A stretch of 64,000 nucleotides of DNA. Source: Epithemia pelagica. Its lineage: Eukaryota; Protista; Bacillariophyta. Within the stretch, counting starts at the first letter, position 1. Each line of letters starts with the position of its first letter. The notes under the pieces are model-generated. The model had not been told where the DNA came from. It ran no database searches and was given only the letters and a program-made list of their open reading frames with translations. The translations under genes were made by a program, and so were the position numbers. The stretch lies in contig OX337228.1 in the NCBI GenBank assembly GCA_946965045.2, positions 6,262,001-6,326,000 of the forward strand. The letters run 5' to 3'. Positions 1 to 8,493 of the stretch are shown here, piece after piece.

Positions 1-2253
1 TCATCCACGGTCGTTGATTCATGCAAAACCACCGGGATAGATTCATTGATACGAGCCAACAATTTTCGAGTAGAATCGTCCAAAGACACAAAGGATGATA
101 CCACAACTAGTTTCGGTCGAATCTTGTTGATTCGTGCAACGCACTTTTTCAATAATTTCCAATGCTTTTTGCGCTCCTCCTCATTATCGTCACTGCTGTC
201 ACTGCTCTTGGTCAATCTCTTGTCAAAGAATAAAGGACTGCACAGTTGCACAAAACTCAAGAGTTCCACAGGCCGTTCTTTCCGATCAAATTGTTGGGCA
301 TCGGACGCGTGAGGTGCCTTGCCTTGGTCGTCATTCATTTGTGTCAGGCCCACAACATCTCGTGTGACGGGTCGAACTTTGGCCTGTAATCGAGCCTCCA
401 CAGGCGTCGCAAAGAACCGAGCCCACAGTCGTGGTTCTTGGCCGAAGAGTTTTTGTCGATCCAACAAATGCAGGACGGCTTGTCGGTCCATAGGAGAAAG
501 GCGTAGCAAGTCGTGACGAGATCCATCACCCGGGGGGTGCGCGTCACAGACATCCAGATCCTCACAGTCTTGTGCCGCCATGCACGCCACGGCTCGATAA
601 CACAAGTCTCGTAGGGATGGAATGGGCGTTTTCGGACGCGAGCCGGAACTTGCTTCGTAAATTTGGTGGACCGAGGCAAGATAGGGGTGTTGCTTCAAGT
701 CCATGTAACCATCGCCACATTCTCGAATCTTTGTGACAGAACTTTGCTCACTTTCGTTCTTAGTATCCGTGCCAGGGACCAGTTCAAAGGCCTGTGCACC
801 CAAGCGATGCTCTGGTTGTACCTGCATGAGTTTATGTATGAAATCCCAACAATCATCGTGGATAATGCCTCCATGGCGAGTCAACAACCCACGCTGAATC
901 CTCAAAAAGGCCAAATAGGGTGATGTTGTCCAAAAGGGAGTCACACCCGTTTGTAATATGTAGGCCAGGGCACCCAAAGCCCATAAATCGGCCGTCCACA
1001 CGGCGGGTCCTAGGTTCGGCTTGGATGATTGTTGGTCTTTCTTACCCTTGACCATACCTTTCGTGTCATCGCCTGTAACAGCTTCAGGACTCATAAAATC
1101 CGGCGTCCCCACAAATTCCGGCCCATTCAAATCCGTCAGGACCAAGTCTTTGGCGGTTCCAAAATCAATCAACACGAGATGGCCGTGACGATTCAACAGT
1201 ATGTTTTCGGATTTGATATCGCGATGGACAATTCCATGGCGATGCAAGTGTTCCAATGCCAATACTAGCTGATAGATCCATATCTTGGCTTGTGATCGAT
1301 GACATCCCACCATGACATTGTTTTTCTCCTTCCATCGTAGCTGTGACCACAAGTCTGACCAGACATCGTGCAGTTCCATGAGATAATACAAATGCTCATA
1401 ATCCTGGAACGCATGAAACATGCGAATAACAAACGGAGATGTAGGCGGCAAGCGTTCGAGTAGAGCACGTCGCTCCATTTGGATTTCATTGTATACATTG
1501 GGATGTTGTCGTTTTGCTAGGTCGGCGGCTTGCTTTTTGGGTATCTTTTTCAGCGCGAATGATTCCTTTGTTACTTTGTGAGTGACGACCCAAATTTCCG
1601 AAAAGTTGCCAAAGCCTAGTTCTTTTTTCTGGATAAATTCTCTGATACTGACTGTTCGCTCCGCATACCGAATGGAAGTCTCTTCTTCCTCAGAAGGTTG
1701 TGCAGCAATCGCTTTGGTGATTTGATTCTTCATGTCCTGGAAAGACAATCTTTCTTCTTCGGTAAGTGTCGACGTTGACTTTAGAACATGCCCATCAATC
1801 AACTCTTGGGCTTCTGTATACTCTTTCAATGCGATCAGCGCCTTGGACAAGCGGTACGCTGCCTGTCAGCCAAGATATAGAAGTGAGAAATGGCAAGGGC
1901 TATCGGTAACAAAAAAGCATCGGTATGACATGGACTGCACCAACCTTCGAAGACTTTCTGTCTGATAAAATCCAGCCATTCTGTGCATCTTCCTTCGCCT
2001 CTCTATATTCTTCCATGACAAAGTGGCAAGCCGACCTGTTGCAATAATTTAAGATTGCTTCTTCTTCGCATTGTTTCGTCCTGTTTTGAGTGGGAAGGGT
2101 CTCCAGGGCCTGTGTGTAAAAGCTCAAGGCTGCCTGAAACTCATTTTGCTGGCGGAACAAATGATTTCCTTGGAGACGCAAGTCCTTCGCCTTCTCAATT
2201 ACTTCATCCAGGCTTTTGCCGTTGGATTCGTCAATGCTTGCATCCTTCTCCAT
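1..2253 (-). CDS. TPR-domain + AGC/PDK1-like Ser/Thr kinase with C-terminal BC-box-like motif and degenerate metallophosphoesterase-like region (3' end runs off the window)
   Basis: Exon 1 is 2253-1945 (TPR helices), intron 1944-1863 (GTTGGT...GACAG), and exon 2 is open from 1862 to base 1. Manual translation gives GFGNFSEI, ALKKI, HRDIKSEN, DFGTAK, EFVGTPDFMSPE, DLWALG and HRLG. The ORF track misses it because the frame runs off the edge. Confidence 0.9.
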
Positions 2254-3015: not shown

Positions 3016-6000
3016 CTATCTTTCGGTTGGCTCTTCGTCCTGCTCAGTATCTCTTTGCTCAGATGACAATACCTCTTCATTTTCGAGGCCTTGGCTGGTG
3101 CCTGTTGTAGCATCACCAGAAAGTGCGAAGAGCTGCCGAAGACGCGTAAAATTATCCGTCACTGGATCCGATGTTTGACAAGTGTTCAAATCAGGATCGC
3201 AACACGAAGTACAACAGAAACAGAAATTCTTGGGCGGTATGCCGAGGCAGTCGGCCGTGATCACAGTTAACTTGGTAGCACCACGGAAAAAACAAATATC
3301 AAACGGGACGTCTCCGGTGAACTTGTTGTCGTCGAGGGTCAGAGATGTCAATTTTTCCAGGTTGGGTAGGGTGGGCGGAATGGGTCCTTCAAAAAGATTG
3401 TCACGAACGTGGAATCTTTCTATATCTACTGCATTGGCACATATCTGTGGACGAGAGACGATGGTAAGATGAATGTGCTAACCAGTTCCTCGAAAACGCC
3501 ACCAAACTCATTCCGTTGACACGTTAAGATAAGAATGTAACTTACCCTGGGGTCGATCTCTCCTGAAAAGTTGTTCTCTTCAACATTGAACTGTATAAGG
3601 TTGGTCATTCTATAAAGTTGAGGAGGCAACTGTCCCTCAAACTGATTGGTGTGTACATAGAACAATTCCAACCCCTCCCAAAAAATATCCGGAAACTCTC
3701 CCCCAAGCTGATTCATCTCAACGCGAAAATCTCTCAAACGCGACGTTAGGTTCACAAAGCTTTGGGGTATCGGTCCAGTTAACCGGTTGTCGTTCAACCA
3801 GAAACGAACCAGACGTTGAAGAGTTCCGTAGTCAGAGGGTATTGGTCCAAAGAAGCCTGCGCTATTCAGCTGTAATGAGTTAAGCCTTGGATGATTCGTT
3901 CCATCCAGAATGGGCAATGGAGCATTGAAAGAATTTCCGTTCAACCACAATTGGGTGATGCTGGGGATCCGCCCCTCGAAACTCGGCAGTGCTCCCGTAA
4001 ACTTGTTGTTTTGTAACTTGATTGTTCTTATATCTGGAAGATCAAATATCTCTTCAGGAATTGAGCCACTCAGAGTATTGTTCGACAAAACCAACGAACT
4101 AAAACCTCTCAAACTTTTCGAAAAATTAAAGAGCTCGAGAGGGATTGTTCCGGTTAGTTCCGAATTAAAGGTAATTGTCAATGCGTTGAAGCATTGCAGC
4201 TGGTTTGTCACAACTGGGAGTTGTCCCCTTAAACCAAACGCAATCAGACGAAGCTCCGACACTTTACCGTTGCAAGCAGCATATAATTCCGCTCTTCGGG
4301 GATCTTCCGCCCAACGGGCCGGAAACGATACGCATACAATTCCGGGCCATTCGCACTGACTATAATTCGACAACCATCGAGGCTGATCGGGCACTTGAGT
4401 AAAGTTGATATAACTCAAATCGATGGATACTCCACCTTCGCCATCCAGGAAAACGCACTCATTGGTATGGCCAGTTTCATAGTCTGGTGGATTGCAGCTG
4501 AGCCAAGGCTTGGTACCATTGGCGGTGGATATAAAATAAAACCAAGCCATGATAAACCTTTCATAGAGCCAGACAGAATCCGAGGTCGTATTATAGAGCT
4601 CACGATCAGGGTTTGTATCTTCGTTGGCAAACCAATTCAATGCCATCTCGAACGCAACTGGAGCTGTGTCAATTGTTTCCGCAAGAATTTGAGTTTCCAG
4701 CCAGGATCTCCACTCGGCAACCTCCATGGTGGTTGGTGCCATGGTGGGGGAGGACGTGGGTGTTTGCTCGGGGTTGACTTGATCATCATCACCATCCTCG
4801 TCGTCATCACTGTCATTGTCTGCTCCCACAACCACACCCGTGATAATGCCCGCTAGGCATATACAGACAATACTTGTCAATGCAAGGAGGAACCATGGAC
4901 GGCGGTAGACCGGAAGTTGTTTTCGTCGAGTGAAATCTTCGGCCGAGACGAGATTGGCCTTTTCGGCTTCTTCGTCCACCGGAGCGGCAACGACCAAGCC
5001 CTCGCCGTCTGGTTCGTCCATCCCGAATTCCACATCGAGTTTGCTACTATTCACAGCAGAGACAGACGGGGCTGCCTCCAAGTACTCTGATGGCTCGTCT
5101 TTGAGAGCGTCGGTGGCATTCATACCTCCGCGAACAGCTCCCGGTTCTGTGGATACGGGGTCGGAGGGGAAGGCAAGGTCCCTTCCGACCGGTGTCATGA
5201 CCTGTTCGTCATTGTATGACAGAGCAGCTGTTGTTGCCACAACGCCGCCCAAAGTTGCGGCAGCCGCGAGACCAGCCACCATCATTGTTTCGTCGTCTTT
5301 GGAGCGCTTTGCGTCCTCGTCCTTGTTTGTACTTGTCGCAGACGAGGACACGGCACCCGGATGCGCGGTCCCCGTGTTGGCATTCTCCCTGGCATATTTT
5401 TCCTTGTCGGTTTCAACAGTTTGAGCCGCTGCCAAGGCATCCATACCCGACATGGTGGATTGAGAAGATGAGGCTCTTTGTTTGATTTTGTCATCCGAAT
5501 CGACAGCTTCCATGACAGCTCCCGCATCCGCAATCGACATGGACATCGAGGCACCAGGCTGTTGAGCCTTTTCCGAACGTTTCGATTGCTGTTTGATCAA
5601 GAGATCGGATTCTTCCGCTTGAACGACGGCCAGAGCAGTAGCTCCTCCAGCATCGGAGAAAGACACGGACGATGCACCCGGCTGTTGAGCCTTTTCCGAA
5701 CGTTTCGATTGTTGTTTGATCAAAAGATCGGATTCTTCCGCTTGTACCATGGCAACCGAATCGGCCCTGGAAACGGCTTGCGAACCAGAAGTGGAAGCAA
5801 CAACTCCTGGTTCGACGGCCACAGCCCCTGGCCGTGTGGCTGGCGCCACCGCCGCGGCACTCTTTTTGGACCAAGCATCGGCTTCCACAGCGGCCACTGC
5901 TGCTTGGGCATCCACCATGGACGCATCACCACCGGATGACTCGTTTGCTGCTGCGGCTATTCCAGGTACAGCCATGGCCCCTGGTCGAGCAGCCGGAGTT

Positions 6001-6713
6001 GCCCGAAAGCGTGTTTTGCTGTCCATTGTGGCAGAAGTGTTGTTGTTGGTTGTCACGGGGCCCAATGGTTCAGAGGCCAGGGGAGTTTGGGGTGACACTG
6101 ATGAATCTTTCTCATCCTCACCCTCGTCCTCTTCTTCATGAATTGTGGTTGGAAGACGGTCATTCGGTGCCTCCCCCTCCATGTCGGATACAGAACCGGG
6201 TCTCTCAACTGGAGCCATTCGATACGAAGCCTTTTCATCCAGCTTACTACTACTATCCGTGGTCAAAATGGAACGCGATGAAGATGGTTCTACAGCCACA
6301 GCTCCTGGTTTGGACACTGTGGAAGAAGAAGCAGTCGACCGATAACTAGCCTTTTCATCCACAGCTGGAGTCCTCATGGCGGGTGCCAAGGGTTCACTGG
6401 CAGTAGCAGTGCTACTTGGACGCATGGAACTGCTGCTACTAGACGAATAGCCGGCCACGGCCCCTGGATAGAACAGTGAAGAGACGGCTCCTGGTCGACT
6501 GGCAGGGACTGAGCTTCGGACCTTGACATTGGATTGGCTGATGCTGCTGCTGCTTGTGTTGTTGGTTCGGGTGAGAGAGGTTGCAGTATTTGTGGAAACA
6601 GTTTGAGGTGGTTCGGATGCTGAGCTACTCCCAGTCGTAGCAGCACCGCCTGTTTGCTGTATTTGGTCCTTGTCTTGTTTTGACTTGGTGGTTGCCTTGT
6701 CGGATGGTTCCAT
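3016..6713 (-). CDS. Type-II single-pass LRR receptor-like protein (long disordered N-tail, TM helix, extracellular LRRs, Cys-rich cap)
   Basis: Exon 6713-3546, intron 3545-3445 (GTAAG...CACAG), exon 3444-3016. TM segment WFLLALTSIVCICLAGIITGVVVGA, plant-type LxLxxNxLxGxIP repeats, and C-terminal ADC..C.CCTSCC. Confidence 0.92.
5551..5744 (-). repeat. In-frame internal duplication (71-bp core, 123-nt period) in the LRR protein N-tail
   Basis: 5551-5621 and 5674-5744 are near identical and encode QAEESDLLIKQQSKRSEKAQQPGA twice. Confidence 0.9.
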
Positions 6714-7664: not shown

Positions 7665-8493
7665 TTAGTCATTAAAGTATGGATTGTTGGGATCATCGTT
7701 GGTGTAAATATCATCGTCTTCTTCGTTGTATTGGTACACTTCTTGATGGGCCGCATCCGAGGCCTGTTGCTGCTGCTGTTGTTGCTGCTGAGCACTCCCA
7801 CTTTGATCGTAATAGGTTCGACTGCACCGGACAATGGCCTTGCCCACGCGACCAATCCAATCGTCCTTTTGCGATTCCGTATCGGCATACAACAAGTATT
7901 GCGTTTCGGGCGTGGAAATTTCAAAGGAATGTCGTTTTTTGGATTTCAAATCGGCCGATTTGACCGTGGTGCAACTGGCCAAGTCCATCATCCCATGCGG
8001 TGTCCCATATTCATTCTTGGCAAAAAACAATTTGGAACCCTTGAGAATAAAGTACCGACGACGCCATTCCTAAAACGAAACATAAACAAGACACAAAAGA
8101 AATGTGAGACACCAAACAACCATTCAATTCGTTGGGATGCATGCCCACGGTTCTCGCTGTGGCTCTCCTTCGTACCTTGAGCCAGGCCGATTGTTTGGTG
8201 AGCCATCCTTCGTATTCGGCATTGGAGGTGTCATAGACAATGTTGGTTTCGGGATCCACATAGGGCGGACGATGATAGCCCATGCCACCGCCAGTGTTGC
8301 CACTGGTACGAAGACCCTGTGGTTGCGCTTGCGGAGGATACATGCTCGTCGGTGCCGCGCCACGCGAGGAAATGTTGTAATAGGTCGGTTGTGCTTGTTG
8401 TGGTTGGGGAGGCTGTGGCTGATGATGATACATGGGAGCTTGTTGTTGTTGTTGATTGTATTGCGGAGGAGGAAAGGGCGGTGGAGCGTTCAT
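7665..8493 (-). CDS. Small PH-domain protein (AtPH1-like) with Pro/Gln-rich N-terminus
   Basis: Exon 8493-8176, intron 8175-8070 (GTACG...TTTAG), exon 8069-7665. The splice gives EGWLTKQSAWLK-EWRRRYFILKGSKLFF...DDWIGRVGKAIV. Confidence 0.9.

Follow-up and report, generated by a model that had tools for sequence, protein, structure and literature searches.

The stretch of Epithemia pelagica DNA analysed here (64,000 nucleotides of contig OX337228.1, G000:C1:6262001-6326000; hereafter the window) carries at its left edge a two-exon gene on the minus strand, whose predicted protein of ~940 amino acids (103 + 837) joins a TPR domain, a PDK1-like AGC kinase domain, a helical linker with a BC-box-like helix, and a C-terminal phosphoesterase-like tail. 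We favour, though by no wide margin, the interpretation that this protein is the diatom form of a PDK1-type AGC kinase found throughout ochrophytes, with other regulatory modules replacing the C-terminal PH domain. Exon 1 (window 1945..2253) starts with an ATG at 2253 and encodes 103 amino acids, namely TPR repeats 1-2 plus the invariant Lys103, the first residue of the clamp pair of the third repeat. It is followed by an 82-nucleotide GT..AG intron in phase 0 (window 1863..1944), which splits this third repeat, and by exon 2, of which 620 of 837 codons lie in the window (1..1862) before the open frame leaves its left edge. In the assembly sequence beyond the window, in which window position p equals L002 position p+6000, exon 2 proves to be a single 837-codon open frame (L002:5352-7862, minus strand) that runs on to a stop codon at L002 5349-5351, 652 nucleotides left of window base 1. 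The exon translations were used as separate queries in searches, and whole-genome searches covered the 60.5-Mb assembly in 23 contigs. The gene is single-copy, as a profile of the tail matched only the gene itself in this genome and found no paralogue.

The locus is present in 5 public sequencing runs. A 2782-nucleotide contig from one of them (run X4, which bears the same organism label and has no recorded library type) matches L002 5361-7861 and then 7944-8224, so that exactly the predicted 82 nucleotides are absent, and the gap ends in CT..AC on the plus strand, that is GT..AG on the gene strand. This contig covers exon 1 and reaches from 29 nucleotides inside the start codon to 10 nucleotides before the stop codon, representing nearly the whole coding sequence with a frame that stays open over 2.8 kb. 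A metatranscriptome contig from a different study (X1) reaches the same junction, with a loose end that corresponds to the first bases of exon 1. Furthermore, the K/AAYR motif split by the junction is invariant and continuous in 52/52 aligned homologues, including open reading frames from MMETSP flagged as complete, and MMETSP transcripts of relatives marked 'type:complete' show the same module order. One spliced mRNA thus encodes the TPR domain, the kinase, the helical linker and the metallophosphoesterase fold. A gene-model artefact that joins a TPR exon and a kinase from separate genes or transcripts deserves practically no credence and was rejected, because the X4 contig drops exactly the GT..AG intron, X1 crosses the same junction independently and the split motif is uninterrupted in homologues, although the long spliced contig comes from one run only and assembled contigs are no proof of a single molecule. 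The original prediction, made from the window alone, had placed all four elements in one spliced frame and proposed leftward extension of the contig and a search for a single transcript; the translation and gene model, the run of exon 2 to its stop codon and the spliced contigs agree with it on each of these points.

As an observation in its own right, the X1 contig is 234 nucleotides long, matches L002 7640-7864 (window 1640-1864) with one letter different and crosses the splice junction; this match indicates that the organism or a very close relative was transcriptionally active in that environmental sample.

The three-repeat TPR domain comprises residues 16-137 of the full-length protein (window 1761..2208, minus strand, intron included). 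Exon 1 matches TPR_1 with an E-value of 5e-6 and 26.5 bits, just below the Pfam cut-off of 27.8 bits, while the N-termini of homologues exceed the cut-off for several TPR families (for example, 45.7 bits to TPR_1 for P0013), which confirms the TPR helices seen earlier. Exon 1 and the homologues also show a weak Pfam match to TPR_BSK1_C. In the alignment, Arg26, Asn30, Asn72, Lys103 and Arg107 stand at the spacing of a two-carboxylate clamp, and in the 52-sequence alignment Lys103 and Arg107 are each kept in 52/52 and Asn72 in 49/52. We take these five to be clamp residues on the Hop/PP5-type TPR pattern. A clamp-type TPR of this kind would bind the acidic C-terminal peptide of a chaperone or of a substrate.

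The C-terminal domain occupies exon-2 residues 530-837, its first ~90 residues being encoded in the window (1..275, minus strand) and the rest at L002 5352-6000. Its nature is hidden from sequence searches: Pfam returned no match for the tail by itself with the E limit set at 10, nor a Metallophos match for any of the 52 family tails with the limit at 1, and searches of PDB sequences with phmmer and with the tail family profile returned noise only. An AlphaFold model of the tail built from the 52-sequence alignment had a predicted local distance difference test score (pLDDT) of 85 and a predicted template modelling score (pTM) of 0.84, and in it tail residues ~170-477 (exon-2 residues 530-837) form the four-layer alpha/beta fold of metallophosphoesterases. 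Foldseek matched the model to SMPDL3A with an E-value of 4e-6, all top matches being members of this superfamily, and VIA-align gave a Z of 16.0 to Lmo2642 (2xmo_A; 222 residues, root-mean-square deviation 3.3) and of 12-14 to dozens of metallophosphoesterases, including purple acid phosphatases, GpdQ, Mre11 and GAP50. In the Atlas, 24/30 nearest clusters by language-model features are Metallophos, and by shape the two nearest bear the name CPPED1, with a TM-score by the row of 0.67 over 246 residues for the eukaryotic cluster.

Class III phosphodiesterases and CPPED1 share the signature D..GD..GNH[DE]..H..GHxH, which binds two metal ions (PMC8366450). The window protein keeps 0/5 of its motifs, and none of the five is found in 52/52 diatom sequences, which have all lost the motif I Asp (to Asn in 38 and to Ser in 13), the motif II GD, the motif III Asn, the motif IV His and both His residues of GHxH. 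Judged by its sequence, the tail is therefore best described as CPPED1-like and not as a strict family member, the catalytic signature being missing. That the diatom tail still hydrolyses phosphoesters through non-canonical residues, as an unusual active eraser, could be argued from the well-preserved fold (Z 16) and from a His-Asp/Glu pair close to the GNHD position, which reads HES in the window protein and HDG in the consensus, but it is very improbable, given that the dinuclear metal site is impossible without the lost residues by the mechanism of the superfamily (PMC8366450) and that the diatom tails never reach Metallophos in Pfam even at E 1. Within the tail, base differences between the assembly and contigs of X2, X4 and X5 cluster at L002 5843-5946, together with one 3-nucleotide deletion; this segment is a Thr-rich insert of low complexity, which varies within the family, and the differences are probably allelic or strain variation.

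A word-based protein search with the tail (exon-2 residues 361-837) returned 82 relatives collinear with exon 2 from end to end, 48 of which also match exon 1 at their N-terminus. The diatom sources are Epithemia (64% identity), Fistulifera, Amphora, Cylindrotheca, Pseudo-nitzschia, Chaetoceros, Ditylum and Odontella. When the profile of the diatom tail alone was compared with 1.84 billion representatives, 176 proteins were found at E up to 1e-3, with Pfam-positive Metallophos proteins among them at E-values of 4e-15 or lower. Non-diatom Ochrophyta contribute longer proteins with the modules in the same order (Chrysoparadoxa australica, a chrysophyte, Tribonema gayanum, Rhizochromulina marina and Nannochloropsis/Microchloropsis), and the same chain is present in diatoms and five other ochrophyte classes. 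In P0194, Pfam recognises TPR_2 (8e-11), Pkinase (3e-55) and Metallophos (2e-12), with similar results for P0171, P0243, P0190 and P0173. Given that the complete signature D(PQ)..GD..GNHD..H..GHxH stands beside Pkinase in P0194, P0171 and P0243, at least three non-diatom members are intact, indicating that the diatom tail is a decayed enzyme; from their sequences, these three are putative writer-plus-eraser bifunctional enzymes. The signature is also complete in P0146, a stand-alone protein of 378 amino acids (tail-profile E 4e-15, Pfam Metallophos 9e-14, JGI name CpdA), and motif loss is intermediate in P0151, P0179, P0156 and P0145 from other lineages. The tail hence derives from an enzyme of the CPPED1/class-III-phosphodiesterase type that is intact in some non-diatom relatives and decayed in all diatom copies examined. 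This is most simply read as an ancestral fusion of a kinase with an active phosphoesterase that decayed to a pseudoenzyme in diatoms.

Independent evidence thus backs three of the four modules in the original prediction, namely the TPR, the PDK1-like kinase (see below) and the dead phosphoesterase. The results modify the prediction in two respects. Its 'dead eraser' is dead in the window protein and in 52/52 diatom sequences but intact in some non-diatom members. The architecture was proposed to be novel, and we found no description of it in the literature on PDK1 and AGC kinases and on kinomes of diatoms, or on stramenopile proteins with kinase, metallophosphoesterase and TPR; the family is nevertheless widespread in ochrophytes and already present in public databases under automatic 'PDK1' names. 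The metallophosphoesterase fold it expected at the C-terminus was found by AlphaFold with Foldseek and VIA-align, and the domain order it suggested looking for in stramenopile proteins recurs in diatoms and other Ochrophyta.

Canonical PDK1, which works in the PI3K-AKT pathway as the master activator of AGC kinases, consists of a kinase domain and a PH domain, and its control in animals and plants depends on the PH domain and on autophosphorylation of the T-loop. The kinase domain of the window protein (exon-2 residues 78-358; window 789..1631, minus strand) matches Pkinase with an E-value of 9e-42 and has a full set of catalytic residues, which the family keeps without variation: the Gly loop, the catalytic Lys (ALK), the helix-C Glu, HRD and DFGTAK. 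DLWALG is likewise invariant, and we take DFGTAK and DLWALG to be PDK1 signatures; the residues that presumably line the PIF pocket (Lys, Arg, Gln and Leu) appear conserved in the PDK1 profile alignment. With the family profile as query, PDK1 accounted for each of the best 21 distinct sequences in the PDB (164 bits, E 4e-47), ahead of PKG with 150 bits. The same profile gave the best other kinase in the genome 129 bits, and the two nearest paralogues are PKA/PKG-like, arguing that this gene is the PDK1-type kinase of the genome. By profile score, no other solved kinase and no in-genome paralogue is thus as near to the kinase as PDK1 is, consistent with the PDK1-like assignment made earlier.

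A different view holds that, instead of being a functional orthologue of PDK1, this AGC kinase is specific to its lineage and acts on substrates of its own, and that its likeness to PDK1 reflects shared AGC ancestry only. Several points speak for this view and against a PDK1 assignment. A single-sequence search of the PDB placed MSK1, PKG, PKC-theta and PDK1 in a near tie at 88-95 bits, the margin of PDK1 over PKG by family profile is only ~14 bits, and the assignment relies on profile scores and not on a tree. The canonical PH domain is missing from the protein, in which Pfam found no PH family at E up to 10; a search of the genome for PH_3 (PF14593) also gave no match, which is weak evidence as the search controls were silent too. 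A variable insert follows the SPE motif. Moreover, the activation-loop Ser of PDK1 is replaced by Glu249 (exon-2 numbering; window 1116..1118, minus strand), which lies in GPEFVGT and aligns with the Ser of NSFVGT in PDK1 (HMMER, chain 3qc4_A), a residue we take to be the activation-loop autophosphorylation site (Ser241 in human). Glu249 varies in none of the 52 diatom sequences and hardly at all in distant relatives. We nevertheless consider a separate AGC kinase of this kind unlikely, although clearly less so than an active diatom eraser, because PDK1 fills all 21 top positions by family profile, the signatures DFGTAK and DLWALG are invariant, no other kinase in the genome is nearer to the family than human PDK1, and automatic pipelines label the family PDK1. 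Taken together, the protein is best described as PDK1-like and not as a strict PDK1, since both the PH domain and the T-loop Ser are missing.

Between the kinase and the phosphoesterase fold lies a helical linker domain (exon-2 residues 386-520; window 303..707, minus strand), delimited in predicted structure models. Modelled alone, it reached a pLDDT of 77. Foldseek found nothing among solved folds at E <1, and the best Z in VIA-align against 48,161 chains was 5.2, which is not significant; the N-terminal Elongin-binding part of ZYG11B in the ZYG11B-EloB-EloC structure ranked 19 with a Z of 4.1, a lead rather than evidence. The linker contains the helix SLRDLCYRAV (exon-2 residues 416-425; window 588..617, minus strand), which fits the BC-box pattern [STAP]-L-x3-[CSA]-x3-[AILV] and has an invariant Leu. 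Few parts of the family are as well conserved as this Pro-Ser-Leu..Asp-Leu-Cys.Arg-Ala helix, and its pattern is kept in distant non-diatom members, including eustigmatophytes and xanthophytes. The linker further contains a near-invariant Arg-Phe-Phe (exon-2 residues 482-484; window 411-419) in the context PRLY.RFF.D, which loosely recalls the aromatic hydrophobic motifs that dock in the PIF pocket of PDK1; according to the model (pLDDT >90), it may equally be a buried core element.

The genome encodes an Elongin C of 108 amino acids in a single exon (L005 1405-1728, minus strand, within G000:C1:3790361-3793546), with an E-value of 5e-25 to human Elongin C. Complexes of this Elongin C with linker residues 25-125 of alignment A3 were predicted alongside three controls, using a mark that is reached by 51/78 solved complexes and by 2/108 mismatched pairs. 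The interaction prediction score from aligned errors (ipSAE) was 0.78, 0.77 and 0.77 in three runs and 0.11 in the best of three controls, and the pairing thus passed the test; contact agreement among runs was at least 82% and the pLDDT of the partner at least 65. The interface was centred on the helix, with the closest contacts between Leu38 and Cys42 (A3 numbering) and Elongin C residues 69-108.

How far these data argue for binding has to be weighed against the possibility that the helix is purely structural, packed in the linker on the phosphoesterase fold or on the kinase, with no link to Elongin C or a ligase, so that the protein would be a PDK1-type kinase with an appended decayed domain. 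Much of the evidence is compatible with such a structural helix and counts against Elongin C docking. The bare BC-box pattern occurs at chance level (1 match observed versus 1.0 expected from shuffles), none of the known BC-box modules, such as VHL, SOCS or Elongin A boxes, was a significant structural match for the linker, and the tail model, a compact two-domain body (pTM 0.84), shows the helix packed with high confidence. The predicted interface overlaps only modestly with the most conserved residues (8 observed versus ~5 expected). The docking was obtained with a linker fragment, and the pass may reflect the memory of the model for solved BC-box/Elongin C complexes, that is likeness and not binding. 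By contrast, the complex test gave scores far above the controls and, as for known BC boxes, put the invariant Leu at the centre of the interface, the helix pattern is kept from diatoms to eustigmatophytes and xanthophytes, and Elongin C is encoded in a genome without a detectable classical partner. We judge a structural helix to be only a little short of an even prospect, and the complex predictions leave the case for a BC-box-like helix that binds Elongin C about evenly balanced. The BC-box claim of the original prediction hence stands in part: the helix is conserved in distant relatives, Elongin C is encoded and the complex scores 0.77 versus 0.11, but the bare motif is at chance.

The further step, in which the helix would act as an E3-ligase adaptor, is not established by these data. 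Pfam searches of the genome for Elongin_A and SOCS_box found nothing, and no Cul2/Cul5 box was identified by eye beside the helix. No cullin of the Cul2 or Cul5 type was found either, the three best genome loci having Cul3, Cul4 and Cul4 as their best matches, with a fourth cullin-like locus (G000:C1:4480395-4480979) left out of this comparison; these cullins also weigh against a ligase role. Function in a Cul2/5-type ligase is accordingly rather unlikely. If the helix does bind Elongin C, it may couple the kinase to ubiquitin ligase machinery, or Elongin B/C may simply stabilise its partner, and in either case the protein would be a candidate Elongin C partner where no classical one was detected.

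Returning to the interpretation that we favour, a diatom PDK1-type kinase with its PH domain exchanged for other modules, a working model can be outlined. The protein would act upstream of other AGC kinases by phosphorylating their activation loops. With the invariant Glu249 at the position of the autophosphorylated Ser of PDK1, its activity would be independent of T-loop phosphorylation, as in a pre-activated enzyme, so that control would come via the partner-binding modules, through protein-protein contacts instead of lipid binding. The dead phosphoesterase may serve as a non-catalytic docking or regulatory domain that recognises the phosphorylated tails of AGC kinases, a suggestion based on the report that human CPPED1 dephosphorylates AKT in the PI3K-AKT pathway (PMC8366450). 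This docking role is purely inferential, which counts against the model at this point.

In its most extended form, which we regard as improbable and offer as speculation, the protein could be a phospho-switch hub. The dead CPPED1 domain would capture phosphorylated hydrophobic-motif tails, the constitutively primed PDK1-like domain would phosphorylate activation loops, and the BC-box helix would recruit Elongin B/C, so that the scaffold either hands its clients to a ubiquitin ligase or is itself controlled by one. The intact relatives would then represent the writer-plus-eraser ancestor, and the fusion could be read as a 'Rosetta stone' that identifies CPPED1-type enzymes as ancient partners of PDK1 signalling.

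The findings suggest that diatoms and other ochrophytes have arrived at a different solution to the control of PDK1, with no PH domain, a phosphomimetic Glu and three partner-binding modules. The joining of PDK1-type kinase and CPPED1-type phosphoesterase in one chain links two enzymes of the AKT pathway and provides independent evolutionary support for the poorly understood connection between CPPED1 and PI3K-AKT signalling. As diatoms have a dead phosphoesterase and some other lineages an intact one, the family also offers a natural series for the passage from enzyme to pseudoenzyme inside a signalling scaffold.

Two neighbours flank the kinase gene. Adjoining it, a 1095-amino-acid open frame on the minus strand (window 3426-6713) looks like a receptor-like leucine-rich-repeat protein: its long N-terminal half is rich in Ser, Ala and Thr and contains internal repeats, leucine-rich repeats occupy the C-terminal region, and a hydrophobic segment is also present. 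Left of the window and directly downstream of the kinase gene, several open frames on the minus strand (L002 2327-4647; G000:C1:6258327-6260647) contain the motif TSGSTGKPKG and look like a multi-exon gene for an AMP-binding protein or long-chain acyl-CoA synthetase.

Each module can be set beside a known system. As in PP5, CHIP and Hop, a signalling enzyme is fused here to a clamp-type TPR domain, whose three repeats show the R/K-N-N-K-R pattern in its canonical spacing; unlike in these clamp TPRs, the first clamp residue is Arg and not Lys. Plant BSK kinases differ in that their TPR is C-terminal and their kinase of a different class, whereas the TPR described here precedes an AGC kinase. 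With BC-box receptors (VHL, SOCS-box proteins, ZYG11B and Elongin A), the linker shares the pattern with its invariant Leu and a predicted docking on the C-terminal helices of Elongin C, and with ZYG11B a weak structural resemblance to its N-terminal Elongin-binding part (Z 4.1). Unlike these receptors, it has no Pfam match to SOCS_box, VHL or Elongin_A and no recognisable Cul2/Cul5 box, and its helix sits inside a larger helical domain that matches no known fold.

The tail resembles the CPPED1/CpdA branch in its fold (Z 12-16 to solved metallophosphoesterases) and in its profile homology to proteins with the full signature, and differs from it in the loss of every signature element in the window protein and 52 diatom sequences and in being fused to a kinase instead of free-standing. 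A metallophosphoesterase fold used as a non-catalytic scaffold has a counterpart in Plasmodium GAP50 (3tgh, Z 13.7), although GAP50 is a membrane anchor of the glideosome and not part of a kinase. Finally, the protein is like PDK1 in being an AGC kinase with PDK1 as its best profile match, in keeping DFGTAK and DLWALG and in having no C-terminal AGC hydrophobic-motif tail of its own, and unlike PDK1 in its invariant Glu for the activation-loop Ser, in the variable insert after the SPE motif, and in an architecture that adds an N-terminal TPR domain and carries a helical linker and a pseudo-phosphoesterase at the C-terminus, where PDK1 has its PH domain.

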